Assembly (NCBI GenBank): GCA_002269645.1
Contig: NIVC01003456.1
Location: 32,801 to 96,800, forward strand
Direction: 5' to 3'
Origin: Macrostomum lignano
Taxonomy: Eukaryota
DNA length: 64,000 nucleotides
The position numbers were made by a program, and so were the translations under genes. How positions within the stretch are numbered: position 1 is the first letter of the stretch; every line of letters starts with the position of its first letter. Below the pieces are notes generated by a model. The model searched no databases and was not told the origin of the DNA. It saw only the letters and a list, made by a program, of their open reading frames with translations. Shown here piece after piece: positions 3,314 to 61,100 of this stretch.

Positions 3314-8193
<4,880 letters not shown>

Positions 8194-20214: not shown

Positions 20215-20575
20215 TTCCCCCTAAGTTGAAAACATTCCCCAGATGGCAAATATCACCTAGATAGCAAGCAACCCCAGACAGCAAGTATCTACCAATAGCA
20301 AGCAACCCTAGAAAGCAATCATCCCCCAATAGTAAGTAAGCATTTCCTAATAGCAAGCAACCCCAGACAGTGAGACAGCAAGTATCCTCTAATAGCAAGC
20401 AATCCTAGATAGCAAGCATTCCCAGATAGGCCTAGCAAGCAACCCAAAAAGCAATCATCCTTCAGATAAAAAACATCCCCTAAAAGTAAGTACCTCAAAC
20501 AACAAGCATCTCCCAATAGCAAACAACCCTAGATAGCAAGCATCCCTCGACAGCAAGCAACCCCAGACAGTAAAC
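20215..20575. repeat. Degenerate 18-bp-type minisatellite (GATAGCAAGCA.CCCC family), array 1
   Basis: Repeated TAGCAAGCAACCCC/ATCCCC motifs, related to the arrays at 27.6 and 28.4 kb. Confidence 0.85.
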
Positions 20576-22820
20576 AAACAAAATTATGCTTAGATTAGAA
20601 AAGCTAACATCCTATTTTAACTCTTTTTGCATGAATTGCAATATTTAACTATGAAAAATTAGCCTTACTAGCTATATAGTAGCTATAGCCTATACTTTAA
20701 TTTTTCTTCTCAAAAAAAAGCCATTTTGTCTGCTAGCAGACAAAAAGGTAGCAGACAAAATGACTACAACTGTGTACCTTTTAGCATAGGCATTATATAC
20801 ATAGTCATACTCATAGCTATAAATGTTTTTTTTACCTTAATACTATATGAATAATATATAGTATTATATATATATAATTTAAGATAATTAGGTTAATTGA
20901 ATAAGTTTGAAAACTCCTACAATTTTTTAAGTAAAGTAAATGTAGACTACAATAAAATTATGTGCTATGTTTTTTATGATTTACGCTATACTGATACATA
21001 ATTTGTCTTGATTCCAAGAAAGACACTATAATATTTTTTGAATAGAATAATTTTCTATGCCATGTATATAATTTTTTCTAGTTATATAATTTTTAAAAAA
21101 AATTACAAACTTATATAATATATAAAAATATACGCTTCTTTCTATAATTTGTTTTAATCTACATTTTTATGCTCAAAGTTTAATTGTGTGTGTGTGAGTA
21201 AAAAAATACTTCTTATATCACGTACATATGCAGCGCAGCCGCCAGCCAGACTGACTAAAGGTCTAAATGAAGCATTGATGTCTATCTTAGCTAAAAAGTT
21301 CTTGTGCAAGTGGTGCATACTCTATGACAGATTTGTTATCTAGATATTACAATACTAGACTCTAGTAGGTATTCTAGAGGCTACCAAATATAATATGGGT
21401 CCATAGCATTGACATGATAGACTGGCTTACCTAATATTAATAAAGAATAAAATGTCATATGAAGTCCTACGAAGAAAAAAAGGCACCTGTATATTAGGGC
21501 TAGGGAGCAGAGCACTGGCTCAAACTATCTGCTAGGCCTACCTAAGACGTATTTTATCTAATGACTAGGGGCCTAATATAATAAATACTTTAACTGTAAA
21601 CCTAAACTAAAAACAAAGTGCTTCAAAATTATATAGATGCCAATCTGATTTCAAACTCACTATCATTAATGCTCTATACACAAATTCTAATCGTTTAGCT
21701 TTAACATAGTTTTTAATTAATGGTGGAGATCAAATTTTCTGGCATTCTTTTGATTCATGATTATTTCAAACAGTGATAACTACCACTTAAAATAGTTGTA
21801 AGACATAAAAGCTGACAATAGTTTCAAATGAAAAGAAATCAAAAGTTGGCAAACTAACCTTGTTTATTTCAAAGGATAGTAAGATTATTGTAACTTATAT
21901 ATTGCTATTTTGCAGTCTATAATTACCTAAATATATATTTCCCATTAAAATGATTTTAAACCAAAGCTAGCTATAGGAAAGGCTATCAAATAGTCCCATA
22001 TGTCATTGTCTGTCAAGTAGCAAGTTTGAGCTAGTAGCTTATAATATCATCTTTGGTTTATAATTACTTCTACATACACACTTTACTAAAATTATTGCAA
22101 ACTAAAGCTGGCAATATTACATTTACTCTAAGTACATATGCATTACATAGGCGGAATAGGCCTACAATATTATTGTTAACCTAGTTTTGACTTTGGTTCA
22201 CGATCATTTTTTATGTGCCTTACACATTCAAATGATCATATACCAAAGCTGATATATAAGTATTATCCAAAATACCACACTTTCAATTTTGCATATTTTT
22301 TGTCAGCCAGTTTTGAACATGCCATTTTTGTGTTTCAAAAATAACAAAACTATTTTTTATACAAAGTTAAAGTATAGTATAGGCTCAGTAGCATTTTGCT
22401 ATAAGCTTAATATCATTTATCAAAAAATACTTGCAAATTACAATAGATATATTAAAAAATATAATTTTTTTAAAACTTAGAAAATTGCTAAAATTAGACC
22501 TATGCTTTTATATAACATTTAAAGTCTAGTTAAAGCTTTCATTGAAAGCATATTAAAAGCAAGGCATTTAAAAAATCATTTAAAACTAGGCCTATAGACA
22601 ATGTCAATTTTCTTTTTTGTAGTGCCTAAACAAACTTGGATTTTCTTAGTAACTTATTGAAATATATGTTATATGCAATTTTGGATCCAGGACATAACAA
22701 GATGCTTCTTGGCGACAAATGTTTTAGCAACACACAACAAGACATATCGGCAACAGATATTGCAGTAATTTAATTATAGCATAGTAGATAGAGTTCCTTA
22801 CTTTGTTATAGTTGTTTTAA

Positions 22821-29960: not shown

Positions 29961-30007
29961 GTTTAGCATTTTTGTGTTTTTAAGGTGTTTTAATAAAAAA
30001 AAATTTT

Positions 30008-30072
30008 GCACTACTAAGATTCAAACCCAGGTTGCTAGATTAGCAGTCTAGTCTGTTCACATCGAGGCTGTC
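30008..30072 (-). pseudogene. tRNA-derived relic (SINE head or tRNA pseudogene)
   Basis: Anticodon-like arm CTAGA-CTGCTAA-TCTAG and T-arm CTGGG-TTTGAAT-CTTAG are present. D-arm and acceptor stem do not pair. Confidence 0.45.
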
Positions 30073-30511
30073 TCTTTTCAATTGGAGAACATGATTTGTG
30101 GCCCTTATAATTCAATACTTACAGCAAGTCGGGTAGAGTAAAAAGTTATGACATAATCAATTTCTTAGTTAGCCAGTATCAGTCTCAATTTAAGTTAGCA
30201 ATATTGGTTATGCAATTTCAATCAAGTCTTGTGTGCATTTCTTTGGCACTGTTTTCACCTTGTTGTGATGCAATCTATTTCAGAATCAGAATTCAAAAAG
30301 TCAGTTTTTTCTCTAGCATTCTTACATTGTATTTCAAGTCAAAAATTTTGCTTGACTTTTGCAAAAAGCATGTTTTTCAAATATTTAATCCCTTTAACAT
30401 TGAGCAATTTCTTAGCCAACATGCATGTACCATCCCAGGAAAATTTCTGATTGAATGGTGCAAATTTGAAGAAAATTGGTTTAGCAGTTTTTTCTGAAAA
30501 TAATTGCATAC

Positions 30512-31296
30512 GGCTCATTCCATATAAGCATGGTCGTAACATGACAGGTTATTTTTACTTATAAAATGAAATCTAATAATAGAATATACTAAACCAATAT
30601 TTTAAATGAAAGATTATTTTGTCTAGAATATATTTATAGAGTTTCATATAGATATCATCATTAGTATAGATGCTATTAAACCTTAAATGACACTTATGGT
30701 CGTAACGACAGGATTTTTGACATATAGAAACTAAAAGGTAAAAGTCTTATAACATTTTTCATTTTTGATATTTTGCAATACATTTTTAAAATTTGACTAA
30801 GAACATCTTTAGAAATCATACTCTTTTATTAGAATATATAAACTCAAAAGGCAACAAAGATACAAAAGAAAAGGCAGCCTTATGGTCGTAACATTATGGT
30901 CATAACATATTTTTTTCTGTCAATTCAGTAACTTTGAGGTACTAATACATTAAAAATATAATAGATTATTTGGTCACCAATGCTTTTATCTGATGATGCA
31001 AGTACTATACTTTTATCTATAGTTTGTTTCAACCTTCAAAAGCTTTCTATTTGTTTTTAAAAGGTACAAAATCTTAATGATGTCTTTTGCTTCGAAAAAT
31101 GTCCAAATTTTTACAAAAATGACTTTTTGCCAATTGATAACATACTAATCCAACATTTTACCATTCCTTTATTCTTAGATTGTATATATTGCACAATATA
31201 AACATTTGGTAAAAAATAGGCTAATTAGGCAATGGCAAGCAAAAATATTGACTTTTTTCTATTTTCCAAATATGTCCATCTTATATGGAATGAGCC
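30512..31296. mobile_element. Non-autonomous DNA transposon with 17-bp TIR and 4-bp TSD
   Basis: GGCTCATTCCATATAAG / CTTATATGGAATGAGCC; ATAC on both flanks; internal repeats of ATGGTCGTAAC. Confidence 0.8.
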
Positions 31297-32341
31297 ATAC
31301 CCATATACATACCTAGATAACTCATTTTTAATATATAGGAATTTTAATAAGTCCAAACTAAGCTAACTATGCATTTGACTTTGAAATGCATATATTTTAA
31401 AGGAACTAACAAGACTAACAATAGCCACTTTTTGAACCATAGGCCACTTTGGTCTGCTTACCAAGTGAAATTAATAAATAAAAATTTTTGTTAATTTTAG
31501 ATGATAAAAACTTGTTTAAGAATGATTATTAATACTGGAACTATTATCTAGCTACAAAATTATTATTCTTTGCTATTGTTTGAGATTAAGATAGTTATAA
31601 TTAATAAATTAATAAATAAAAAGTTTAAAGTCAAAAGTAGTATAAGTAAAAGTATTTATTAATCAATATTAATTTGTCCTTAATAAGCTGGCTTATACTT
31701 TAACATCTATTAAACAAGGTCTTATTAGGCTATTTGCTAGTGTTCCACTATAAAGGGGGTTTATATATAGTAGCCATAGCTATAAGCAAAACTATGGCTT
31801 TTTCCAATTCTCTATATTATGTAGCCATATGGACCCCAATATTACTATATTCCCATAGTTCTCATAGCCACAGTTTTAACAAAAAGTCTAGGATATAAAG
31901 TAGTTTGAATTAGGAATTAGGTTTAACTTAATATTTAAACAATTATAAACAAAGATAAAAGCTAAGTTTTTGAATCTATGATGCTGTTTATAAAGTTAAT
32001 AAGTTAATAAAGTTTATCATTTACACTATAGTAGAGTTTGCAAAATCAATCAAGTATTAGTGCTGTCATTAGTTCTCCTAAGCCACAAGTTGAATTTATA
32101 TTTATATTAATATAGTGAACAAGGTAGCTGAAATATCTGTGGTAAATTATTGGTTAGGATTGTCTATTGGGAAGAGCATTATGACTAACTGAAAAGTATA
32201 AGGCTGTATTGCTAAACATAAAATATGATTGCTTATTTAATAGTTAAAAGTTGTAATATTCTAAGCTGGGAATATGTTGTCTATGCATGGTAATTTTGAT
32301 AAAAACTGGAATATTATATCATATAATCTCCTTAAAATCAG

Positions 32342-42600: not shown

Positions 42601-44718
42601 CGATGAGCGACGACGAGCTAAGCAAAACGAAAAGGCCATGAAGCGACTTCAGCAAGCACTGGAGGAGCAGCGACGACTGGTTACTGAAAAGGAGAAAGAG
42701 CTCCAGCAGCAGAAGCAACAAAAGCAGGCAGAGGCCCAAACAAAGATTGACGAAATGCGCAAGAAGGCTCAGGACATGCTCGCACTTGCTGATAAGGAGG
42801 AGCATGCCCTACGCAAGCGGCATGGTGACAGTGAAGAAGCAAAATCAAAGAAGAAGAAGAAATGACTATGTTTGTACATTTTATCAGCTTAAAATTTACT
42901 GAATGTTTGTAGTAACTATAACTCTAAGCTTCATGCTGTAGTCTTTATTGTCTGAGGTGCTTCTTTTTATTTTTGTCTGCGCAACTTGAAACAATTTTCC
43001 TTGTACATGTAAACCATTTTTGTTTTCGAATTTACTAAATGTCTGTCATAGTGAAAAGAAAAACTGGTTTGTGGGAAGGATGCGAGTTTTTTAAGACCTG
43101 CGCTAAAAATTAGTCCTTGCGCTACTTTTCTTCAAAAACTGGGTGGCAACTATGGGGACTAGTTGGTTCAGGTTCGGTTCCGGGACTAGTTGGTTCAGGT
43201 TCGGTTCCGGGACTAGTTGGTTCAGGTTCGGTTTCTGGACTAGTTGGTTCAGGTTCGGTTTCTGGACTAGTTGGTTCAGGTTCGGTTACGGGACTAGTTG
43301 GTTCAGGTTCGGTTTCTGAACTAGTTGGTTCAGGTTCGGTTCCGGGACTAGTTGGTTCAGGTTCGGTTCCGGGACTAGTTGGTTCAGGTTCGGTTTCTGG
43401 ACTAGTTGGTTCAGGTTCGGTTTCTGGACTAGTTGGTTCAGGTTCGGTTACGGGACTAGTTGGTTCAGGTTCGGTTTCTGAACTAGTTGGTTCAGGTTCG
43501 GTTCCGGGACTAGTTGGTTCAGGTTCGGTTTCGGGACTAGTTGGTTCAGGTTCGGTTTCTGGACTAGTTGGTTCAGGTTCGGTTTCGGGACTAGTTGGTT
43601 CGGGTTTATTTCAGGACTAGTTGGTTCAGCTTCGGTTTCGTGCTGGCTGGTTCTGGCTTGGTTTGATTTCTGTTTAAAATGCGATATCTGTTCTTTCGAA
43701 TGCATTAATAAATTTTGTCAGCTGCACAGAAATAAAAAGCCAAATATTTGAAACTTTCCAAAGTAAATATCGATCGTAATTCCTATCACGGTTGTGTACC
43801 TAAGATCAATTTTAGGCTAAGAAAGGCGTTGAAAATATAATCGCCCTAAAAGACTCCAGAATAGCAGGTCTTTGTGCTCACATGGGCTGGCGCGCCCTTG
43901 CCGGGTCCGCCGACGAAAATCCACTCAGTGGCGCCGTGTTCGCTGTCGCTGGCCAGAAATCCCGGCCTTTTGTAGAGCCGCCTCAGCCTCCGAGCAACTC
44001 GCTGGTTGCAGACATTCCTGCAAGCGCGTGTTAGTGGCTGTTTGATGCTGACAATTCTCAAGTCCTGCAGTTAATATGCGAGCACCTTGAAGTGCAAATG
44101 CAGTCGTGTCACTCACCAACCGACGTACCAGGAGTCACGGCTCAGATTTTCCGGCTCCTTGGACCAGCGGAAAAAGTGGCCAAGCGTTGGGAACTGGTTC
44201 TTGTAGTCGAACATCTGGCAGAGCACGCTGGCCCCTCCACCGCCGCCCTCTGGGTGGCCTTCGTTGGTCCACCGGCCCCGCCGGGCCTCCCGATAGAGCC
44301 GGCGCAGCAGGTCAAGGTCGAGGCGCCTGGTCACCGCCGGCCAATCCGCTGCGCCACCGCGGATGACAACAGGCACGTTCCGCTCCAGGAACTCCGACCG
44401 GAACCGGGCTGGGCTGATGGCCTCGGCGCCTGCCTGCAGCTCTGGCAGGCTGGTGAGGTTGGCGCAGTGGCCGCAGTCGGTGTCGGGCTGCAGTAGCATC
44501 TGCACCCAACCCGACTGCGCCGCCAGCAGACAGGGTGCGCTGTACGGGTCGCTGCCGGGGTTCGCCCGCCTCGCCCAGGCGGCCATGGCGGAGTCAAAAA
44601 GTTCGGCCGCCCATCCTGGCGACTCCGGCTCAGGAGGCCAGGCGTGGCGGCCGCCGAGCAACAGCAGCAGCAGCAGAGCCAGCAGACCCCCGCCTACCTT
44701 TTTGGCAGTACCTGGCAT
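39665..44718 (-). CDS. Signal-peptide-bearing JmjC/cupin-8 domain protein (JMJD8-like), ~318 aa
   Basis: join(44718-44117, 44017-43882, 39959-39827, 39750-39665), phase-consistent. Hydrophobic N-terminus LLALLLLLLLGG; PVVIRGGAADWPA; WIFVGGPGKGAPAH|IDAV...WQAQIQGSKRW...LRPGDM...WIHET gives an HxD...H triad. Confidence 0.85.
40100..43154 (+). mobile_element. Full-length hAT DNA transposon (3055 bp)
   Basis: 14-bp TIR CATAGTTGCCACCC / GGGTGGCAACTATG; perfect 8-bp TSD GGGACTAG (40092-99, 43155-62); encodes a spliced transposase. Confidence 0.95.
40454..42865 (+). CDS. hAT transposase, ~755 aa, two introns
   Basis: join(40454-41231, 41309-41508, 41576-42865) is open. N-terminal C2H2 finger (CRLC...QHADGAKH), ILLDEDT, TDSCNAMRG, CSLH (CxxH), ETRWL, HGNADSERV and a C-terminal K/E/Q coiled coil. 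Confidence 0.92.
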
Positions 44719-45377: not shown

Positions 45378-45640
45378 TCCACTACAAAATCTCTGACGAG
45401 TCACAACAGTTCTCGAAATTTTCGCATGCCCAAGGCCATATGATCATATTAGCTACCGTTACCGTACATGAAATCTCAGACGAGTCACAACAGTTCTCGA
45501 AATTTTCGCATGCCCAAGCCCATATGATCATATTAGCTACCGTTACCGTGCATGAAATCTCAGACGAGTCACAACAGTTCTCGAAATTTTCGCATGCCCA
45601 TATGATCATATTAGCTACCGTTACCGTACATGAAATCTCT
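45378..45640. repeat. 84-bp tandem repeat (~3 copies) between the divergent JmjC and polycystin genes
   Basis: Unit GAAATCTCAGACGAGTCACAACAGTTCTCGAAATTTTCGCATGCCC...ACCGTACAT; the third copy is slightly shorter. Confidence 0.9.
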
Positions 45641-46187: not shown

Positions 46188-49100
46188 ATGCTGCGGATCT
46201 TGCTGCTGCTGCTGCCGCTGCTTCTGCTGCAGCAGCTGCTTGGAGTCAGCGGCCAGGCGCAGGAAGGTGAGGCAATCGGCAAGATTTCCCCCGAGTAAAA
46301 TCGCTAAAGCTTGCTTAATAATATGAGAACTTAGAGTTTCTCATCATAGGACAGTATCTCTCACGAGCTCACAGCTTTAAATTAAAATCTGAAACTCTCG
46401 AACTAAGTGCCAGAGTCTTGAACTAGCTTTAACTCTCGAACTACTAAGTGCCAGAGTCTTGAACTAGCTCTAACTCTCGAACTACTAAGTGCCAGAGTCT
46501 TGAACTAGCTCTAACTCTCGAACTAAGTGCCAGAGTCTTGAACTAGCTCTAACTCTCGAACTAAGTGCCAGAGTCTTGAACTAGCTCTAACTCTCGAACT
46601 AAGTGTCAGGGTCTTGAACTAGCTCTAACACTCGAACTAAGTGCCAGAGTCTTGAACTAGCTCTAACTCTCGAACTAAGTGCCAGAGTCTTGAACTAGCT
46701 CTAACACTCGAACTAAGTGCCAGAGTCTTGAACTAGCTCTAACACTCGAACTAAGTGCCAGAGTCTTGAACTAGCTCTAACTCTCGAACTAAGTGCCAGA
46801 GTCTTGAACTAGCTCTAACTATCGAACTAAGTGCCAGAGTCTTGAATGGAGGCAACCAGAATCGCAAAGTCTGCGACATCAAAGGTGAAGGTCCTGCTAC
46901 TTGTCTTCTTTGATGCAAGGGACATGTGTCAAGCAGTATCTGGTGAACAGCAATGTTACTTTGCTGGAGCAGTTTCCATCCAGGGATTTTTTCCTGAATC
47001 TCAAAGAGGGGGCGCAAAGGAACTCTTTTTCCCAACATAGATCATCAGGAGAGCCACAACGAAGGAACTTTGGAGTGTTCAGACCACATGCACACAGAAC
47101 TTCTTAAGGAACGACCTGGGAGAGGTTTTATAGAAATTATATGCACTACTTTTTAAACTTTTCAGAGTCCTACACCTTGGTGATCAAGACTGGCAAAACG
47201 GGGACCACCAACAAGGTTTTCTTCAGCCTTAAGGGCCAGATGGGCGATTCCCCACAGCAGAGCATCAACTTTGATGGCTCCGACAAGCCTATCACGAGCA
47301 TGTTCACACCGGGAAAGTGAGTGCCTTCACTGGGCTAGGGGAGCATTCCCAAGAGCACAGCATGTTCACACCGGGAAAGTGAGTGCCTTCACTGGGCTAA
47401 GGGAGCATTCCCAAGAGCACACAGGATGTTCACACCGGGAAAGTGAGCCCAGTTCACTGGGCTAGGGGAGCATTCCAAGAGCACACAGGATGTTCACACC
47501 GGGAAAGTGAGAGCCTTCACTGGGTTAGGGGAGCATTTCCCAAGAGAACATCTGCAACAGTCGCTGCCATTCTCTCTCGCAAGGGTGGATGTCATCGAAG
47601 GCAAATTTCGCGGAGCCCTGGGCTACATCAGCACAGTGAAGGTCAGCCAGGACTCTTACAATGGCTGGGAAATCGAAAGTGTAAGTTGTCTTGCACTCGC
47701 TTGTCTGCTTTAAGTAGTTATTTAGGAGTCGCAGTGCTATGCTCATACCCTTTGGCCCCTTTGGCCACTGAAAGTGCCAGACTGGCGCGACCGAGTTCAG
47801 TTTTTGTTGTCTCTCTCAGTTAACAGCCACCTCATCAGTGGTATCGCTGATGTGCAAATGACAACCGAAATCGGAAGGCCTTAGAATCCTGTTACACCGC
47901 GTTTTATGTTTCTGTTAGCGATGCATCATTATGTTTGCTGCAATTCCACGTGCCCTCTCAGATTGTGGTCTTCAGTGACACCACCAGGGTGTCCAACAAC
48001 GAGACCTACATTGTTCGGCAGCCCCAGGACATCAGCTTCAACGGTGAGCAGCGAATTGTCCTTGCTCCATGCTATGACATTCCCATGACCCATGTGAGCA
48101 CTGACACTGTGCTGTCCTGCTCCATGCTATGACATTCCCATGACCCATGTGAGCACTGACACTGTGCTGTCCTGCTCCATGCTATGACATTCCCACGACC
48201 CATGTGAGCACCGACACTGTGCTGTCCTTGCTCCATGCTATGACACTCCCATGACCCATGTGAGCACTGACACTGTGCTGTCCTGCTTCATGCTATGACA
48301 TTCCTTTTTTTGTAAAGTCAGCTTATTTGGCAATGTTCAACCGTCTCTATACATTTTGCGGCAGCGTGCAAAGGAGAGAAAATGAATCGGCATAGAATAA
48401 CGTGGAAGTCAGTAGCAGTGACTTAGTGCAAATAGCCAATACAATTTACAGTCACACAACTGAGGTCATCACACCCATGACCCATGTGAGCACTGGAACT
48501 GAGCTGCCCTTGCACCCTGCTATGACATACCATGACCCAATGACTTACAGTGAACTGCGGCTGGAGCGCCTGGAGCAGCTGGATGACCTGCCAAGGCACC
48601 TGCGCCACAGGTGGGGTCCAGATGCGAATCCGCAACCCGAACAGCCCCCCCAGGATCAACTCTGGCAAAGCGTGCGAGGGCTCCGAGTTCGAGCAGCAGC
48701 CCTGCAAACTGGCAATGGACTGTCCGGGTAACACTGGGGTTCGGGTGCTGGGTCCAGTGGCTGGGAATGCAACTGGGTAGCTGGGAATGCAACTGGGTAG
48801 CTGGGAATGCAACTGGGTAGCTGGGAATGCAACTGGGTAGCTGGGAATGCAACTGGGTAGCTGGGAATGCAACTGGGTAGCTGGGCATGCAACTGGGTAG
48901 CTGGGCATGCAACTGGGTAGCTGGGCATGCAACTGGGTAGCTGGACATGCAACTGGGTAGCTGGGCATGCAACTGGGTAGCTGGGCATGCAACTGTATAG
49001 CTGGACATGCAACTGGATAGCTGGACATGCAACTGAATAGCTGGACATGCAACTGGATAGCTGGGCATGCAACTGTATAGCTGGACATGCAACTGTATAG

Positions 49101-52100
49101 CTGGGCATGCAACTGGATAGCTGGACATGCAACTGTATAGCTGGACATGCAACTGGATAGCTGGGCATGCAACTGTATAGCTGGAGATGCAACTGGGTAG
49201 CTGGACATGCAACTGGGTAGCTGGGCATGCAACTGGGTAGCTGGATATGCAACTGGGTAGCTGGACATGCAACTGGATAGCTGGGCATGCAACTGTATAG
49301 CTGGACATGCAACTGGGTAAGCTGGACATGCAACTGGGTAGCTGGGCATGCAACTGGGTAGCTGGGAATGCAACTGTATAGCTGGACATGCAACTGGGTA
49401 GCTGGGAATGCAACTGGATAGCTGGACATGCAACTGTATAGCTGGACATGCAACTGGATAGCTGGACATGCAACTGGATAGCTGGACATGCAACTGTATG
49501 CTGGGCATGCAACTGTATACGAGCGTAGCTGGGCATGCAACTGGGTAGCTGGACATGCAACTGGATAGCTGGACATGCAACTGGGTAGCTGGGCATGCAA
49601 CTGGGTAGCTGGACATGCAACTGGGTAGCTGGGCATGCAACTGTATAGCAGGAAATGCAACTGGGTAAGCTGGACATGCAACTGGGTAGCTGGGCATGCA
49701 ACTGGGTAGCTGGGAATGCAACTGTATAGCTGGACATGCAACTGGGTAGCTGGGAATGCAACTGGATAGCTGGACATGCAACTGTATAGCTGGACATGCA
49801 ACTGGATAGCTGGACATGCAACTGGATAGCTGGACATGCAACTGTATGCTGGGCATGCAACTGTATACGAGCGTAGCTGGGCATGCAACTGGGTAGCTGG
49901 GCATGCAACTGGGTAGCTGGACATGCAACTGGGTAGCTGGGCATGCAACTGTATAGCTGGACATGCAACTGTATAGCTGGAAATGCAACTGGGTAAGCTG
50001 GACATGCAACTGGGTAGCTGGACATGCAACTGGGTAGCTGGGCATGCAACTGGGTAGCTGGGCATGCAACTGGGTAGCTGGACATGCAACTGGGTAGCTG
50101 GGCATGCAACTGGGTAGCTGGGAATGCAACTGTATAGCTGGACATGCAACTGGGTAGCTGGGAATGCAACTGGATAGCTGGACATGCAACTGTATAGCTG
50201 GACATGCAACTGGGTAGCTGGGCATGCAACTGTATAGCTGGACATGCAACTGGATAGCTGGACATGCAACTGTATGCTGGGCATGCAACTGTATACGAGC
50301 GTAGCTGGGTATGCAACTGGGTAGCTGGATACAACTGGGTAGCTGGGCATGCAACTGGGTAGCTGGACATGCAACTGGATAGCTGGACATGCAACTGTAT
50401 GCTGGGCATGCAACTGTATACGAGCGTAGCTGGGCATGCAACTGGGTAGCTGGGCATGCAACTGGGTAGCTGGACATGCAACTGGGTAGCTGGGCATGCA
50501 ACTGTATAGCTGGAAATGCAACTGGGTAAGCTGGACATGCAACTGGGTAGCTAGCTGGGCATGCAACTGGGTAGCTGGACATGCAACTGGATAGCTGGAC
50601 ATGCAACTGTATGCTGGGCATGCAACTGTATACGAGCGTAGCTGGGCATGCAACTGGGTAGCTGGACATGCAACTGGATAGCTGGGCATGAAACTGTATA
50701 GCTGGACATGCAACTGGATAGCTGGACATGCAACTGTATGCTGGACATGCAACTGGGTAGCTGGGCATGCAACTGGGTAGCTGGACATGCAACTGGGTAG
50801 CTGGGCATGCAACTGGGTAGCTGGACATGCAACTGGGTAGCTGGACATGCAACTGGGTAGCTGGGCATGCAACTGGGTAGCTGGACATGCAACTGGGTAG
50901 CTGGGCATGCAACTGGGTAGCTTGGTAAGTGGTATTTAGTTTGCTTATCCGAGGTATGAAGCGGTATCAAGTAGCCATATCGGGTATTATTGGGTCGAGT
51001 AGACTCAAGCTCAAACAGTAAACACCTGGCCAGGCCGAAACTTATTGAGGTAAAAATTGAGTCAGAATTTCACTACCAGCATGTACAGAGTCTATCGGCC
51101 ACTCACTCCACTGTCAATTTTTACACCCCAAATTCCACAGTGAATGGCAACTGGAGCGACTGGTCCCCCTGGAGCGCCTGCAGCGTCAGCTGCGCCCAAG
51201 GCAGCCGCAGCCGCAGCCGCACCTGTACGAACCCGGCGCCCGCAAACGGCGGACTGGACTGTGTCGGCGCCGCCAGCGACACCGGGGTCTGCACCGAGTC
51301 GCCCTGCCCCAGTTCGTCCTCAGATCTTACTCTGACTACTCTGAGTCGCTAGCAAATAACTCTGTAACTTGTATTGGAAACTGCTTATTATATCTGTCTG
51401 GCAGCTCAGACTCTTGTTACCTCATCTGGGATTTCATCTCTGGCAATCACGGAAACCCTGATTTGATCAATCCGTTACTTCGCCGGCTGGCCCTGTGGGA
51501 AATATAGCTTACTATGTTAGACCAGGTGTCGGGTGCCAAAAAGCGGCCAATATTGCAGAAAGATCGCCCCTAAGAGCTCCCCAAGCCAGCAGATCCGCAC
51601 CCGCCCCGCAGTCGATGGCCAGTGGGGCAGCTGGTCCCCGTTCTCCGCCTGCAACGCCAGCTGCGGCCCCGGAGTCCAGACCCGAGCTCGCCTGTGCAAC
51701 TCGCCAGAGCCGAAGTTCAACGGCAGGAACTGCCAGGGCGACGGAATCGAGCTCAAGACCTGCGAGCTGACTCCATGTCCCAGTGAGTTGGGCTGGCTTC
51801 CATAGCAACCATCACCTACATAAACCTGTTGAGTCACGCTCCCGTAGCATTCACCGCAAAGTCACAGCCTCACAGCCCCATCCGTGCCCCAACCCGCTGA
51901 GTCCGTGGCGCACTCGAAGTGCTGGGGTGGGCGTTGCGTGCAGCAGCCGGAGTCGGGACGAGGCTTCAGCGCGGCCGTTTCCTCGGCAACTTGTCGCCAG
52001 GAATTGTCCGAGGTAAGGTGCCGAATTTATCTCAGTAAATCTCTGTGTGCATGAATAAGCCTGCTTGAGCTGTGATTGGATAAAAGCTTTCAAATTTATT

Positions 52101-55100
52101 CAGCGCAAACTCATTTATACGATTTTTTTTAGCGTTAAAAAGATATATAGAATCGCTTCAACACTAAAGCTCGTATTTCACAAATCCTTTCTTCCATGAG
52201 CTGCTGGTCCTCAATGTGGACTGCAGCTTCAGTAGCTCTGGCACAAATCCTCACGCAATTCTGTCCATGAGCTGCTGGCCCTCAATATGGACTGCAGCTT
52301 CAGTAGCTCTGGCACAAATCCTCACGCAATTCTGTCCATGAGCTGCTGGCCCTCAATGTGGACTGCAGCTTCAGTAGCTCTGGCACAAATCCTCAAGCAA
52401 TTCTGTCCATGATCTGCTGGCCCTCAATGTGGACTGCAGCTTCAGTAGCTCTGGCACAAATCCTCACGCAATTCTGTCCATGAGCTGCTGGCCCTCAATG
52501 TGGACTGCAGCTTCAGTAGCTCTGGCACAAATCCTCAAGCAATTCTGTCCATGATCTGCTGGCCCTCAATGTGGACTGCAGCTTCAGTAGCTCTGGCACA
52601 AATCCTCAAGCAATTCTGTCCATGAGCTGCTGGCCCTCAATGTGGACTGCAGCTTCAGTAGCTCTGGCACAAATCCTCAAGCAATTCTGTCCATGATCTG
52701 CTGGCCCTCAATGTGGACTGCAGCTTCAGTAGCTCTGGCACAAATCCTCACGCAATTCTGTCCATGAGCTGCTGGCCCTCAATGTGGACTGCAGCTTCAG
52801 TAGCTCTGGCACAAATCCTCAAGCAATTCTGTCCATGATCTGCTGGCCCTCAATGTGGACTGCAGCTTCAGTAGCTCTGGCACAAATCCTCACGCTTCAC
52901 TTTAACAGTCATGAACAGAGCCGGAACGGCTGCACCAGGCTATGGCAGTCCCAACAAGAACTGCAACCCGACAGCCCGACATTCCAGACCAGCTTTACTT
53001 TATTGCTAATGGCTGGCGACTGAGATGCCCACTCCAGAGCCGTCTGCATCTCCAGATTCCCTCGCAATCGAACTCACAGGTTCACAAAGTTACACAGTTC
53101 TGTGGCATTCTGTTGGTGCGTGGGTGCGTCTGAGAGCAACTCTGCGATTTTAATTTGCATAAATTAAGCCTGGCTGCCACCTCAGATTCAAGAGACAAAA
53201 TGCCATCTTGATACCAGATTGCTCTTCGCCATAAGTCAGCGGATCCTCAGCTGATGGCCCATCAGTCAGCGGATCCTCAGCTGATGGTCCATCAGTCAGC
53301 GGATCCCAGACAATAGCCAATGAGTTGTTTCCCATATCGCCCAAAGCAAATTCGATGAACATCCCGCAGTCGACGGCGGCTGGTCCAGCTGGGGCGAGTT
53401 CTCCAGCTGCTCGAGCTCGTGCGGCGACGGCATCGAGATTCGAAACCGGCCCTGCACGAACCCGCCTCCCCAGTTCGGCGGGCGGCCTTGTCCGGGGAGC
53501 GCCAACGACTCGAGGTCATGCAATCTCAGGCCATGCCCGAGTGAGTGGCTAGGGGCTTCCCAGCAGTTTAATGGTGGTCGAATATCGGGATTTAATAAAA
53601 ACTGCACGAGAGACCCGCAGAGACTCGAGATGTCCAATCCCGAACCCCTAAACCTTCCAGTTGACGGCCAATGGAGCGAGTGGTCCACCTTCTCTGGGTG
53701 CAGTCGCAGCTGTGGCTCCGGCAAGCAGTGGCGCGGCCGCCAGTGCGCCAGCCCGGTCCCGCAGTTTGGCGGTCTCGACTGCCCCGGCGGAGCCAACGAG
53801 ACCGCGAGTGCAACACCAACCCTTGTCCAGGTGGGTGCTTCGCGTGGAACCAGTTTCCTGATCGAAGACTTAAATCCAGAGAAAGTAGAGAGAATCATTC
53901 GAGTAAAAGGGTTGACCACGTGTCCATTGGCAAGATAATATGACTTTTAGACTCTCTCAGCAGCCAGCCTCCCTGCATCCGACGCCATTTTCTTGAACTT
54001 CCCTGCAGTGGACGGCGGCTGGTCTGCCTGGTCCGCCTTTGCTGACTGCAGCGTCACCTGCGGCAACGGCAGCCACAGCCGCCAGCGCAGCTGCAGCAGC
54101 CCGGAGCCGCAGTTCGGAGGCCTCAACTGTTCTGGCAAGGCGGTCGAATTCGGCAACTGTAACCCCGACCTTGCCCGAGTGAGTGACAGCCGCTGCTCTC
54201 CCTGCCAGCCCCACCTGCCGAGTGAGTGACAGCCGCTGCTCTCCCTGCCAGCCCCACCTGCCCGAGTGAGTGACAGCCGCTGCTCTCCCTGCCAGCCCCA
54301 CCTGCCCGAGTGAGTGACAGCCGCTGCTCTCCCTGCCAGCCCCACCTGCCCGAGTGAGTGACAGCCGCTGCTCTCCCTGCCAGCCCCACCTGCCCGAGTG
54401 AGTGACAGCCGCTGCTCTCCCTGCCAGCCCCACCTGCCCGAGTGAGTGACAGCCGCTGCTCTCCCTGCCCAGCCCCACCTGCCCGAGTGAGTGACAGCCG
54501 CTGCTCTCCCTGCCAGCCCCACCTGCCCGAGTGAGTGATAGCCGCTGCTCCCCCTGCCGCTGTCACTCACAGGGGGAGCAGCGGCTGTCACTCACTCGGG
54601 CAGGTGGGGCTGGGCAGGGAGAGCAGCGGCTGTCACTCACTCGGCCAGGGTGGGGATGGGTCTGGCTGCTCACTTCTTCATCGTACAGCTCACCTACTCA
54701 CATATTTGACCTTTTAATTAGCTTTCGAATAGACCAGAATTTATTACGAGCATTGAGTGCATGGTCCGGATGCGCAGTAATTAATGAGCCGTGGCAGCAC
54801 TGGACAACCCATGCACTCGCAATGACAATTAAATCTCAGTGCTTCAAGCCAAGCCATGCCATGGAACTCTCCCGCAGTTGACGGAGCCTGGACCAGCTGG
54901 TCTGACTACTCGGCCTGCTCGCTCACCTGCGGCAGGGGTCGCCAGTGGAGCCAGCGGAGCTGCAGCGCTCCGGAGCCGCAGTTCGGCGGGAAAAACTGCC
55001 CAGGAAACTCCACCCGCGACCGAGCCTGCCTGGTCACTGAGTGCCCCGTGGACGGCCTCTGGGGATCCTGGGGCGCCTGGGAGAGCTGCAGCGTCACCTG

Positions 55101-58100
55101 CGGCAGCGGCACCGCCTGGAGGAGGCGGCACTGCGACTCCCCGGAGCCTCAGTTTGGCGGCAGCCGCTGCAGTGGTGCAGGCAACGAGAGCACGCCCTGC
55201 CATCCGGAGGACTGCCCCAGTGCGTGCTGCCGCATGGTCTTGCTTCCCATTTCCCCTGTACTCAGCGCATTTGTGCTTGGGCCATTTTCGCCTATTCCCC
55301 GCCCCTGGTTTGTCAATTCAGCTTCACCTTGCAGACGCCGTCACCCGTTCACAGTCATCCCGCCGTTTCTTCCATATTATTTTTTTCAATTCTCCGTCAT
55401 CGCCCAAATTTCAGTAAACGGCGGCTGGTCGCCCTGGTCGGAATTCACCGCCTGCTCCAGGTCTTGCGGGGGCGGCCAGCGCAGCCGCACTCGGCGGTGC
55501 GACTCCCCGCCGCCCCACGCCGGCGGCGCTGACTGCGTTGGCAGCGGAAGTGACGTCCAGGACTGCGGCACGGACCCTTGCCCAGGTCTGGCTTGTCTCC
55601 TACAAGACTATGCGATATGAGTTATGACCCCGCTGCCAACTATAGCAAGATTTTCCATCTATATTAAGCTGTTGCGTTTGTGTACGGTTGGGTTGCCAGA
55701 CAGAAGAATGCCTGCAGGGCCATAGACTTCAGCAGGGGTGTAGCCAGTGAGACAAGGGTGCCGCTGATAAAACTCATGTCACCCCTTCGCAACTGATTTG
55801 GAGCCCATTCACGTCAGTTGTGGTGTCCCCTACCTGCTGATTTGGCCCCCTCACAGAAGGTGAGCCCTTGGTGCCCCTTGATGCTGGCGCCCCCTTGGTG
55901 CTAGAGCCCGTTGTTGATGGTGCTTTAGTGTCTCTGGGAGTATCTAATATTTTGACCGGGTTGAAATTGCTGTCGCCAAACCGATTGAGGTGTATCGTCC
56001 TTCCTGTCTCGTTTTTGTTTCTGGTCTGGAAAAAGCGCAAACTTGAAATCATGAGATGCTGAAGAGAATTCACAGATGCATTTTTTATATCCGCCCTCAC
56101 CCCAGTGAACGGAGGCTGGGCGCAGTGGAGCGCCTGGGGCAGCTGCTCCAGGAGCTGCGGCTCTGGCCTGGTGCAGCGCAGCCGCGGCTGCACCAACCCT
56201 GTGCCCGAATTTGGGGGCGACGACTGCGCTGGCGAGGCTGTCCAATCCACCGCCTGCGACATCCCCGCCTGCCCCGGTGAGGCCCGCCCTGCCCCCAAAC
56301 ACCGCCTGCGACATCCCCGTCTGCCCCGGTGAGGCCCGCCCTGCCCCCAAACACCGCCTGCGACATCCCCGTCTGCCCCGGTGAGGCCCTCCCTGCTCTC
56401 TACCGGGTACTGCTCAGGATGACCCCTCAGCTCCCAGCTGACTTTTAAAGCTGATTAATCGGGTCGTCAGGCTGTTTAACGGCTCTGCAGCCCCGACCCA
56501 CGAAGCCTCCCGAGAGTCAAAAAGTCACTGGAATCACAGAAATTCATGAGTTTTTTGTTCCATCTTTTTGTTAACTAGTTTGTTTCTTGATATTCTGTTT
56601 GACCTTTTCGTTCGCAAAGATTTACCTTTCTGCCAATCTGCCTTAAAAGCGAAGTGTAACTGAGCCGCCTGCCAATTCAATTCCATTCCCAATTCAATTC
56701 CAGTGAACGGAGGCTGGGGGCATGGGGCCAGTGGGGCGACTGCAGCCTTAGCTGCGGTGGCGGCAACCAGCTGCGCTCTCGTCAGTGCGACTCGCCGAGA
56801 CCGCAAAACGGCGGAGGAGCCTGCGTTGGCACCGCCAGTGACGGCAGGCAGTGCAACACGGACCCCTGCCCCAGTGAGTGCCCTCGTTTGTCCACACAAA
56901 TTACTCATGTCTTCAGCACCACTCGACTGACTTCGGGCTTTCAACTTAGAGTTTTACCTGAAAGCAAGTCACACAGACATCCGCCCTCTCCGACTGCAGT
57001 TGACGGTGGCTGGTCAGCCTGGAGCGAGTGGTCCGGCTGCTCCACCAGCTGCGGTACCGGCAAGTCGACCAGGCAGCGTGGCTGCTCGAGCCCTGTGCCG
57101 CAGTTTGGCGGCCGGGGCTGCTCAGGCAGCGGCTCAGACATTCGCGACTGCCAACAAGGGCCCTGTCCAGGTGCGTTTCCTTGACCACTGACGTGACTTG
57201 GTCTTTCATGAATATATCTATGTATGAAAATATTGTGGCATGGAATCGCTTCCGATTTTATGTGCTCATCAACAGTGCACGGAGGCTGGAGCGAGTGGAC
57301 CGAGTTCTCGAACTGCTCCGTAACCTGCGGCAATGGAACCCGTAGCCGGAGCCGCAGCTGCAGCAGCCCGGCCCCCCAGTACGGTGGCCGCTTTTGCCTG
57401 CCCTGCACCGCAAACCTTACCTATCCGGAGTCTGCCGACAACGCCTCTGTCTCTTTGGCAACTGTTGTCAAGGACTACGTGAGCGTTGAGGACAATTGCT
57501 CCTACAAGGGAAACTACTATGAGGTGGACGGCGATCTCATAATTTGGGACGATGACGTTCAGTACGCGAACTGCAGCATGGAGCCCTGCATATGTGAGTC
57601 ACCCCATCGTAGGTCCTTTGGTCTCCCTATAAATTAGCGATTGCACATTTACTTCGTACCTCAACCCTCTCAATACGCAGCGACCCTTGCTGACAAGGCC
57701 AACAGTTTCGTTGACGAATTCCTCAAAGGCCTGAACAACTCAGGGACCAACAAATCCGTAAGTGCAGGAGAGCCCCTAGTTGCAATTTCGCTCAATTACT
57801 TTGCACCTATTTTGTAATTGCGGCTGCATCTTCTCTCTACGCTGGCCCGCAGGACTCGGAGTCCATGAAGGCCGCACAGGAGATGGTGAACAAGATTACA
57901 AACCTGTTGGCAGATCAGCTGAAGAACGCGGAGGTGGGTAAGCCTGTGATGATCGACGCCAAGGGCGTCTCCGTCGGCGTGTCGAAGGTGAACTCGTCCA
58001 ACATGGCGGGCTCCGAGATGAAGTCCGGTGACAAGGGCGGCATCGTGCTGGGCGACGCAGAAGATACCGGGGTCGAGGGCCAGGACGCCAGTCTGAAGTT

Positions 58101-61100
58101 CTCAGCCCTGGACCCAAAGACCTTCTTCCCGGGCGCCGATAAGAAGGACCAGTCCGCGGCAGTTGTTTCCCTCAACCTGGCCCAGGGAACTGAAGTGAGT
58201 TGGGCTTTTCCCGGCCATCAGTGCTGAGCCAGAACCCAAAATGTCTCCTGGAAATCTGATTCATTTCATTATGGTAATTGATTTTAGGTGGTGAAGCCAA
58301 GCAACGCCTCAAAGGTGTCGCTAACGCTATCGCTGCCCAACCAGAACCAGGAGACCACCGAGAACCTGCTGCAGCCGGTGGCCATGAAGCGTGGCAAGCG
58401 GATGGTGCAGAAGTTCACGTTCGAGGCGGCGAACACTGCCATCAAGGTATGAGCAGCCTCACTGCATTGTCTGAAAAATCGTGCTGTGAGACAGTGCGCA
58501 GAAACGTTAGCTGAGCTCCGATGAAGAAATGAAGAAAAACCGAAAGCTCAGAGAAAAGCCGGGATGCATTAGCGGGACCTTTCAATGAATTTGCCGCCCC
58601 GCCCCTCAGGCGTCACTGGAGCTGCCATCTTCGGACTCCTACCTGATGATGTTCCGAGGCGGCGTCCCGGCCAACTTCAGCAAGCAGGCGAACTTTACGG
58701 CTTGGGTGCACTCAAACGAAACCATGAAGATCGAGACGGACGGCAGCCTGGAGGTCCGGCTGAAGTTCGACACCGCCTTGGCGGCTGCTCGGCGGCGACG
58801 GCGACGCGAGACAGCCTCGCCGGAGAAGCCGCTGACGCTGAGCGTGTTCATCCCCGGTGGCCAGATGGCGGCGGGCAGCGCCGTTTTCATGTCGCTGGAG
58901 CTCGTGGACAACGGGACGGCAGCGGCAGCGTCCGGCAGCAACGTGACGACGGAGTCGGCCAACATGAGCCTGACGGTGGGGGTAGCGTCCATTACGCCGA
59001 GGGCGTGGAGCGACCTGCTGGGAGGCTGGGTTGACACGGACGCAGAGGTGGCGGAGGAGTCCAGCATCGAAAAGATGGTGTTCAAGAGCAACTTCCTCGG
59101 CTCGTACTCGGGCAAGATGTTCATCGCGCCCAACACCATCAATTTTGCCACCGTTTTCAACAACTTCGCGGGCAAGCTGGCTGAGAACTTTGTCACGCTG
59201 TTGGTGCTGTGTCTCATAATAGGCATCTACGTGGTCGTCTCCGTCTGGATGTGGCGACTGGACCGACAGGAGGCTGCCAATGTAAGTGCCAGCAGGCTGG
59301 GACTACGGCAAATTTGGATTACTTGCCACTGGGTCTCCGCATGTATAGGCCTTATTAGGCAGTGTAGGTGTTACGTTGAACATGTGGTACAGTCACACAG
59401 TATAAATTCCCTTAAGCTGTGCACAAAAGCTGCCTGAGCAATAATAAAGATCTAAGGGTGATTTGGATTGCCAGAGTGAGCTAAGGGGACAGTGGCTAAG
59501 TGAAATTAGCCACTAAATTAACATATTTATTTGAGAGTTAACGCAAGCGCTAGTTCCTCTGAGATGGAAGAGTTTTGTTTTTACTGCAAGATTTATACTT
59601 TTTATTTCGAGGCTATGAGCTAAGTAGCCGATCTTTGTACACACTGCATGCTTCAACAAATGGAATGATTGGCACAGCATGCGGTCTCAACCCAATCCAC
59701 TCACTCAGCTGCGGTATGAGCCCCTGGAGGACAACGAGTTCGACAATGACTACACCTTCATCATCAGCGTGTACACCGGGGACGAGTCCGGCGCCGACAC
59801 CACCTCGAATGTGTTCATCAACCTTGCGGGCACCTGGGGCTCTTCTGGCAAGCGCCAGCTGTCTGACGGAGTGCGCCAGAACTTCTCCCGCGGCTCCGTC
59901 TGCAACTTCGCAATGACCACCAGGGCTCCTCTCGGCGAGTTGCGCGGCCTGAAGGTCTGGCACGACAACAGCGGCAAAAAGCCGGGCTGGTTCCTGGAGA
60001 AGATACTCATCGAGGACCTGCAGACCAAGAAGAAGTGAGTTTCTTCTTGTCTTTCTTCCTATCTAGCTCGTGTTCAGCATGTCCGCCCTTTTGCCGCTTG
60101 GCTGGTTTGTTGCTTTTACAACACTGTGTGGTGGCTTTCAAACTGGATCATCGTTTCAGATGTATCTGTATATGCTCATATTAGTCATGAGTCTCTCCTC
60201 GGAACACTGCGATTCCGGTGGAGGTTCATAGATTCGAGGAATGCACAGGAACCCACTAAATGCCCACAAATTTCACTATTTCAGGAAACTTCACATCTTT
60301 AAAATGCTGGCCTATTTTCATAACCCTTAATTCTGGGCATATCAGGGTGTAAAGAAAGCAAAATTAGGGATAGAATTAGGGATAGAAGGTGGAAATTTTA
60401 TTTGAATAGTACAAAGCCTAGCGATTTTTGCGCCTTCCACTAAATTCATTGCTAAGTCTACGACAATGCGACAATTTAGCCAATTTAGCACAAGACGTTC
60501 AATGTGCTACACAGTCTGAATCTGCAAATTCCTTGCCCAAACTCACCTGCAGCTATGTCTTCATGTGCGATCAGTGGCTGGCTGAAAACAAGTTTGACAG
60601 CCGTACCATGCGGGTGCTGCCCGAGGTGAAGCAGGACCAGCGCTTCCAGGAGATGATGCTGCGGTACAAGGCGGGCGGGGTGGTCAACAAGCACGTGATC
60701 ACGGCGCTGTTCCGCAAGACCGGCCAGTCCAACTACTCCCGGCTGCAGCGCACAGGTGTGGCCAACGCCATGTTCTTCCTCACAATGGTGTGCAATGCCA
60801 TGTGGTACGGCAAGGGAGACGACCTGGATGCCGAGGCTAACTTCAGCATCGACCTCGGCCCGATTTCGGTCACCTGGTTCCAGCTGTACTCTGGCATTCT
60901 CTCCATGGCCATCACCTACCCCTGCATCTTCGCGGCGGCTGAAATCTTCCGCCGAACAAAGAAATGGCAGCGTCGCTGGAGCGAGGACGATGTGGAGAGC
61001 AAGAAGAAGGAAATTCGGCTGCCCAAGGGCTTCCTGGTCATCGGCTGGGGCCTCCTGCTCCTGGGCGTAGGGCTGAGTTTCTTCTTCACCTTCCTTTACA

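Follow-up and report, generated by a model that had tools for sequence, protein, structure and literature searches.

A cysteine-free, probably uncleavable GPS equivalent in a polycystin-1-like receptor gene of Macrostomum lignano and its spiralian relatives

In this study, a 64,000-nt stretch of genomic DNA from the flatworm Macrostomum lignano (contig NIVC01003456.1; hereafter the window, whose positions serve as coordinates throughout) was analysed for a polycystin-1-like receptor gene. The GPS of this receptor, which precedes the first transmembrane helix (TM1), has lost all four Cys residues together with the residues of the cleavage triad that carry out the reaction. We consider it likely that the segment is the uncleavable GPS end of a GAIN domain, as found throughout a spiralian clade of PKD1L-2-type proteins. 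[quoted passage not shown] The window gene and its relatives would represent a naturally uncleavable, disulfide-free GAIN/GPS that has been conserved since before the divergence of flatworms, annelids, molluscs and brachiopods.

The GPS equivalent and its homology

The gene codes for a polycystin-1-like 11-TM receptor composed of TSP1 repeats, a GAIN-like domain, TM1, a PLAT domain, TM2-5, a polycystin domain and a channel region. This assignment follows from the PLAT domain in the next exon, the TSP1 repeats upstream and TM2-5, the polycystin domain and the channel region downstream, and it puts the segment in question at the position expected for a GPS. The segment is located in the exon 58610-59281 (224 residues; plus strand, like all exons of this gene), which has an ag acceptor at one end and a gtaagt donor at the other. 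According to its translation and splice sites, the exon encodes the final third of the GAIN-like domain with, in this order, a polybasic tract (AARRRRRRE), the Cys-less GPS segment with its stalk, and TM1.

The GPS equivalent extends from 58997 to 59101, from the Pro replacing the first canonical Cys to the Gly replacing the Thr, and it aligns gap-free with the GPS of polycystins just ahead of TM1 and PLAT. Its landmarks are P-R-A-W (58997-59008), G-G-W (59021-59029) and F-L-G (59093-59101), the latter being the positional equivalent of the H-L/T/S triad in the alignment; the 10-residue stretch around F-L-G covers 59078-59107. The stalk, equivalent to the Stachel or tethered agonist, occupies 59099-59146, ends with PNTINF (59129-59146) and is conserved with canonical polycystins. 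TM1 (59189-59254), a 22-residue hydrophobic stretch modelled as helix 460-491, begins 29 residues after the end of the GPS-like segment.

A preliminary description of this DNA had claimed that both Trp residues, the spacing and the downstream PNxIxF of a polycystin GPS are kept, that P, A, F and S stand in place of the four Cys, and that HL/T/S has become FL/G. All of this was confirmed in a MAFFT alignment with canonical PKD1-like proteins, for which Panthera PKD1L2 (Pfam GPS 4e-11) and 26 further canonical relatives were used as reference. Cys1 to Cys4 are substituted by Pro, Ala, Phe and Ser, respectively, leaving 0/4 Cys in the window GPS; His is replaced by Phe and Thr by Gly, and the Leu is unchanged. 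At identical spacing, the segment retains Asn, Leu and both Trp as well as the stalk F-x-x-P-N-x-I-x-F. Like the canonical GAIN/GPS of human PC1, PKD1L2 and sea urchin REJ3, the segment stands immediately before TM1 and PLAT, and it shares with canonical polycystin-1 both Trp, Asn-x-Leu, the stalk F-x-P-P-N-x-I-D-F and approximately 300 homologous upstream residues. However, canonical polycystin-1 has four Cys (two disulfides) and H-L/T/S and is autoproteolysed, whereas the window protein has no Cys and F-L/G.

Separate profiles of the Cys-less and the canonical sequences were compared with hhalign. These profiles matched over the whole 340-residue ectodomain (99.6%, E 8.8e-24, 298 columns) and over the 290-residue pre-GPS part alone (99.4%, E 3.4e-21, 235 columns). 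The 50-residue GPS alone, without the PN motif, was matched as well (94%, E 1.2e-7, 45 columns) and in the same register as in the MAFFT alignment, indicating that the resemblance exceeds chance. The evidence from profile comparison that the segment is a true GPS/GAIN homolog is strong.

Structural support was sought in an AlphaFold model of A0A1I8FW75 (P0001), a 599-aa M. lignano protein that is 98% identical to the spliced window protein. The model was based on a 44-sequence alignment and reached a mean predicted local distance difference test score (pLDDT) of 75.6, with 87-89 over the GPS; an earlier model based on three aligned sequences reached a pLDDT of 35 and was discarded as unusable. 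Two long helices are followed by a beta-sandwich, whose two final strands (421-426 and 430-438) are joined by a tight turn that holds F429 and G430. With Phe and Gly in the final hairpin turn, the predicted geometry matches that of a GAIN cleavage site. The modelled domain has more strands than the GAIN of adhesion GPCRs, which agrees with the report that GAIN of the PKD1 type, for which there is no experimental structure, possesses an extra beta-sandwich (PMC11697300). In a Foldseek search the PLAT domain (lipoxygenase) came first, and the first plausible match to the ectodomain was the uncleaved HormR-GAIN crystal structure of BAI2, 8oek (prob 0.99, E 7e-3, 199 columns). As the whole 599-aa model served as query, PLAT dominates this search and the GAIN match is diluted. 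Taken with the alignments and hhalign, AlphaFold and Foldseek bear out the proposal of a GPS/GAIN homolog made in the preliminary description.

Several observations weigh against this assignment. The match to the GAIN of 8oek is modest (TM 0.16-0.26, root-mean-square deviation 11.8 Å), and subdomain A is modelled as two helices only. Furthermore, Pfam searches with the exon and with the 416-aa ectodomain gave no GPS (PF01825), GAIN or REJ even at E<=10; a check with curated GPS/GAIN models, suggested in the preliminary description, thus failed to recover the segment. In our view the model-based evidence favours a GAIN fold without being conclusive. When the window protein was compared with PDB sequences, chance matches only were returned. 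The exon by itself gave no match in a word-indexed homolog search, and a profile re-search returned only the same four proteins.

The Cys-less spiralian clade and the loss of autoproteolysis

Relatives were collected with P0001 as query in an exhaustive HMMER scan that covered 1.84 billion representatives. Among true polycystins, the best match was PKD1L-2 of the planarian Schmidtea mediterranea (P0028; AKN21725.1 / A0A0H3YFF8), with 39% identity over residues 70-598 (E 4e-77), and tblastn showed this protein to be collinear with the window from the TSP1 repeats through the channel region. From these comparisons, the window gene is likely a Macrostomum (co-)ortholog of planarian PKD1L-2. The latter, a polycystin of rheosensory neurons, has the same architecture, a GAIN-like domain that is likewise undetected by Pfam, and a Cys-less GPS reading LTPRIWNF...FKSNFLGTF...APNMIDF. 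It differs from the window gene in having 4 instead of at least 11 TSP1 repeats; it also has no polybasic tract, and basic residues are very scarce in the final third of its GAIN-like domain. Most of the top HMMER matches, which outranked the true polycystins, were LOXHD1-like proteins with 10-20 tandem PLAT domains that matched the PLAT exon. They were set aside as non-polycystin, and their rank implies that best-hit annotation may mislead.

In total, 18 polycystin-type matches possess a GPS with zero Cys or a single stray one. Common to all of them (18/18) is the pattern [VI][FVY][KE][SN][NKST][FMI][FL]G[STA][FY], typically FKSNFFGSF, in which the Gly at P1' is invariant (18/18). The P1 residue differs between the two M. 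lignano copies, F-L-G in the window (59093-59098) and F-F-G, the clade consensus, in A0A1I8FW75 (residues 428-429); the copies also differ at V/A and KR/PS. Members were found in Platyhelminthes (Macrostomum, Schmidtea), Brachiopoda (Lingula, with many paralogs), Annelida (Owenia) and Mollusca (Littorina, Babylonia, Saccostrea, Ylistrum, Argopecten, Pinctada), and the relatives from hemichordate, amphioxus and vertebrates have a canonical GPS. A neighbour-joining tree was calculated from TM1 and PLAT only and is hence independent of the GPS. In this tree all 18 Cys-less proteins are united in one clade without any nested canonical sequence, and the two flatworm proteins are sisters. Monophyly across four phyla suggests that the change is old, preceding the split of the phyla, and was kept by selection rather than resulting from decay. 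Judged from sequence, the Cys-less GPS is an ancient, spiralian-restricted clade feature. No description of a Cys-less spiralian polycystin clade turned up in the literature that was searched.

The clade also stands apart in domain annotation. Pfam detected GPS in 0/8 clade members tested versus 6/6 canonical relatives tested, and since curated GPS models miss the whole clade, annotations of spiralian PKD proteins would under-report GAIN domains. REJ upstream of the GPS is typical of canonical relatives (4/5 by Pfam), whereas neither the window protein nor the 7 clade members tested gave a REJ match. The domain is not universal in the PKD1-like family, as human PKD1L3 has no REJ (PMC1934368). 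A distant eukaryotic relative from an ENA metagenome contig (P0004, 1285 aa) keeps the Cys pattern and has C-V-S-R-T plus an insertion in place of C-N-H-L-T; its stalk is nearly identical to that of the window protein, and two RRKR motifs are located approximately 200 residues upstream.

An odd GPS could also result from relaxed constraint in a decaying or mis-assembled copy, and indeed many near-identical copies exist in M. lignano, for one of which the database model (P0002) is full of frameshifts. However, the window gene maintains a single uninterrupted frame over three upstream exons, 58610-59281 and two downstream exons, all with consensus splice sites, and it is collinear with a functional ortholog into the channel region. 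Moreover, across the four phyla FKSNF[FL]G[ST]F varies less than the sequence around it. An origin by decay or mis-assembly is therefore extremely improbable and effectively refuted; a pseudogene or assembly artefact was ruled out by the open frame and the collinearity.

GAIN autoproteolysis requires a His base at P2 and a Thr, Ser or Cys nucleophile at P1'. In the window GPS these positions are occupied by Phe and Gly, respectively, and neither His nor Ser/Thr/Cys is present in the triad positions. As both the general base and the nucleophile are missing, an N-to-O acyl shift is impossible. The prediction in the preliminary description that autoproteolysis has been lost thus agrees with the residues of the site, and its loss across the whole clade is strongly supported by the alignments, with the reservation that non-cleavage is deduced from chemistry for every member, which counts against the interpretation. 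A shifted cleavage at G/S was considered and rejected, as the next residue is S, T or A across the clade and occupies the canonical P2' position, and there is no His base.

Natural and engineered GAIN domains that are folded but uncleaved are known. The latrophilin mutant T838G, with Gly at the P1' position, folds and stays uncleaved, whereas T838A/P misfold (PMC3321182). Gly at P1' is thus compatible with folding, and the clade may be seen as a natural counterpart of T838G. PKD1L1 and PKDREJ, members of the same superfamily without HL-T/S, are not GPS-cleaved (PMC9672506); they differ in being REJ-containing and in representing vertebrate lineages unrelated to the spiralian clade. ADGRB2/BAI2 and ADGRB3/BAI3 have a folded, uncleaved GAIN as well, and the BAI proteins resemble the window protein in combining TSP1 repeats with GAIN, BAI2 (8oek) being the best structural match other than PLAT. 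BAI2 differs in its 7-TM core (versus 11-TM in the window protein), in a furin site outside GAIN, and in a retained canonical HLS within a GPS that, going by the text on BAI2, appears normal and disulfide-bearing.

The clade GPS has given up both disulfides and the H-L-T/S triad, with FKSNF[FL]G[ST]F being fixed instead, and in the mechanism that we propose the ectodomain would remain covalently linked to the stalk and TM1. The domain would fold as a GAIN-type beta-sandwich in which the conserved stalk strand is buried. The stalk after the site is as conserved as in canonical polycystins, and in PC1 this element acts as a tethered agonist (PMC11458180). Force acting on the TSP1-rich ectodomain might reach the 11-TM core through an unbroken chain, and signalling would be single-chain and non-dissociative, as in cleavage-resistant adhesion GPCRs. 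It is tempting to speculate that the loss of the disulfides softens the sandwich mechanically and makes it more compliant. In Schmidtea, RNA interference against pkd1L-2, a gene that marks the rheosensory organ, impaired the sensing of vibration and water flow (PMC11448475). That planarians need PKD1L-2 to sense flow and vibration amounts to a natural experiment, which suggests that a mechanoreceptor of the polycystin type can work without self-cleavage.

Basic motifs and candidate convertase cleavage

The preliminary description had further proposed that autoproteolysis might have been replaced by proprotein-convertase cleavage at a polybasic site about 65 aa upstream. The RRRRRR tract (R6; AARRRRRR/E, 58790-58807), identified by translation, alignment and the model, ends 63 aa before the Pro replacing Cys1, close to the distance proposed. 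It fits the furin/proprotein convertase consensus R-X-K/R-R and belongs to an extracellular or lumenal region with 10 N-glycosylation sequons. A role of the tract as an RXR signal for retention in the endoplasmic reticulum was rejected, as the tract is lumenal. In the AlphaFold model the final two Arg, together with the eight residues that follow, make up a loop ahead of strand 341-347, and the pLDDT decreases here from 78 to 63. A second furin-type motif, KRGKR/M (58387-58401; P0001 residues 247-251), is modelled in the hairpin turn that links strand 242-246 to strand 251-257.

Basic motifs were then counted as R-x-[KR]-R or RRL within the 120 residues before the GPS. They are present in 11/18 clade members versus 0/32 canonical relatives (Fisher 8.5e-7, a value that ignores shared ancestry), and shuffling predicts fewer than one motif of each type per group. 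S-S-R-R-L-L occurs 65-66 residues before PN in Lingula and in two gastropods. S-R-R-L-L, in the loop ahead of the GPS, is shared by the Lingula proteins P0046, P0065, P0070 and P0073, Littorina P0118 and Babylonia P0132, at approximately 65 residues before PN (85 in P0070). The Lingula paralog P0047 has RVKR-L at the position of RRLL. RRLL represents the optimal motif of site-1 protease (S1P), R-X-aliphatic-Z (PMC8310232), and in this respect the Lingula, Littorina and Babylonia members carry candidate sites resembling S1P substrates. R6, RVKR and KRRRR resemble furin substrates; the motif of the window protein is of the furin type and not of the S1P type. Owenia RVKR aligns with the R6 loop of Macrostomum.

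Potentially, then, a cut by furin or a related convertase at RRRRRR/E replaces autoproteolysis and generates a two-chain receptor, the release of whose N-terminal fragment is regulated by the convertase. The consensus match in a sequon-bearing lumenal region, the location at a helix end and loop with reduced pLDDT, the clade-wide enrichment (subject to the same shared ancestry) and the Owenia motif at the same loop all point in this direction. So do the RRKR motifs of the metagenomic P0004, another protein without HLT, and the precedent of BAI2, in which an uncleaved GPS is accompanied by a furin cut at another place in the ectodomain (bioRxiv 10.1101/2023.03.12.532270). However, R6 was inserted in the loop that precedes the one with the conserved RRLL and is not positionally homologous to the brachiopod and gastropod sites; the corresponding Macrostomum loop 365-385 has no basic residues. 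In the alignment Schmidtea PKD1L-2, which is the nearest ortholog and functional, lacks the tract, and Lys plus Arg make up 3% of the region there. The ortholog comparison advised in the preliminary description therefore gave a divided answer, with the Cys loss conserved in the 18-sequence spiralian clade and the polybasic site not conserved in Schmidtea PKD1L-2. The first four Arg (327-330) are moreover predicted at the end of a short helix (321-330), and the enrichment of basic motifs ignores shared ancestry; both are further points against cleavage. Shedding is not an obvious outcome either, since a cut at R6 would leave approximately five strands (341-438), interleaved in the sandwich, on the membrane side. 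The fragments would then probably stay associated, and a non-covalent heterodimer is favoured over shedding. None of the results speaks for the regulated instead of constitutive shedding put forward in the preliminary description. Altogether, we regard convertase control of fragment release through R6 as possible but rather unlikely.

The coding sequence itself suggests another origin of the tract. R6 is encoded by CGG CGG CGA CGG CGA CGC, preceded by GCG GCT GCT, a CGN-rich low-complexity run that possibly arose by neutral slippage and in this respect also counts against a selected cleavage site. On this explanation R6 is a neutral, lineage-specific expansion of the trinucleotide type in a tolerant surface loop, and the receptor is purely single-chain with an uncleaved GAIN. 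It is consistent with the insertion relative to Schmidtea, with the function of Schmidtea PKD1L-2 despite almost no basic residues there, and with the frameshifted paralog model P0002, which reads differently over this stretch. It is opposed by the intact R6 in both M. lignano copies compared (window and P0001), by the second furin-type motif in the same domain and by the clade-wide enrichment of basic motifs, which argues against randomness. Neutral expansion in a single-chain receptor appears plausible, at slightly less than an even chance.

R6 and KRGKR may accordingly be described as lineage-specific candidate convertase sites in predicted surface turns, and that the protein is processed at one of them is conceivable, though less probable than that it is not. 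The replacement of autoproteolysis by a convertase is a reasonable but unproven proposal, for which the clade-level sequence pattern offers better support than this R6 tract: the consensus match and the 11/18 versus 0/32 distribution speak for it, and the location of R6 off the conserved loop and its absence from Schmidtea PKD1L-2 against it. More speculatively, and with a probability that we place on the low side, the clade may have exchanged autoproteolysis for in-trans cleavage by secretory-pathway convertases in the loops flanking the GPS. This exchange would then involve RRLL sites of the S1P type in brachiopods and gastropods and furin-type sites in an annelid, a scallop, Lingula paralogs and Macrostomum. 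Were this so, the proteins would be protease-controlled two-chain receptors of a different kind, whose membrane part keeps more of the GAIN sandwich, and true processing of the basic motifs would constitute the first instance of GAIN self-cleavage being exchanged for convertase cleavage.

Organization of the gene and the surrounding window

The window consists of eukaryotic genomic DNA with GC-rich exons and repeat-bearing introns. The N-terminal ectodomain is encoded by TSP1-repeat exons between 48550 and 57400 with at least 11 repeats, recognized by WSxWSxCSxSCG motifs and by tblastn collinearity with the TSP1 region of Schmidtea PKD1L-2; a Pfam TSP_1 match (2.6e-11) covers 57212-57634. The GAIN-like domain starts with the exon 57681-57757, which by its splice junctions and the AlphaFold model (helix 78-100 of P0001) would encode the first long helix. 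By splicing and AlphaFold, the second helix is assigned to the exon 57853-58194 along with the initial beta-strands of subdomain B. This exon contains LDPKTFF, the counterpart of the conserved NPF/Y motif of the family, and is included in the pre-GPS match of hhalign. The middle strands of subdomain B are attributed to the exon 58288-58446, defined by splicing and a motif scan, in which KRGKR is located.

Downstream of TM1, the exon 59709-60034 encodes the PLAT/LH2 domain of the following cytoplasmic loop (Pfam PLAT 2.3e-14; phase-matched junction; lipoxygenase PLAT domains in Foldseek). TM2-5 are encoded, together with the polycystin domain and a channel-like TM region, by exons between 60553 and 63692, which are collinear in tblastn with residues 869-1648 of Schmidtea PKD1L-2; the polycystin domain and PKD channel region correspond to residues 1117-1648. 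On single exons, Pfam Polycystin_dom gave ordered but weak, sub-threshold matches. The gene continues toward the end of the window, and its extreme 3' end may fall outside.

Tandem repeats are frequent in this region. The intron after the first TSP1 exon is filled by a 20-bp repeat (48767-50922; approximately 106 copies, 87% matches), which gives rise to spurious minus-strand open reading frames (ORFs) of up to 829 aa. In two minisatellites, 54164-54558 (44 bp x 9) and 56248-56396 (52 bp x 2.9), the units consist of a TSP1 exon end plus a donor-like GTGAG and could thus supply alternative splice donors. More minisatellites with periods of 38-111 bp, all non-coding, occur around and inside the gene at 45387-45639, 46393-46846, 47300-47550, 48057-48304 and 52189-52892. 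On the minus strand, an ORF at 44113-44718 starts with the signal-peptide-like sequence MPGTAKKVGGGLLALLLLLLLGG. This ORF probably represents an adjacent gene's first exon and would mark the 5' limit of the polycystin gene. The base composition of the window is strongly heterogeneous, with a GC content of 0.27-0.31 at 8001-10000, 18001-22000 and 30001-32000 versus 0.52-0.62 over the polycystin gene.

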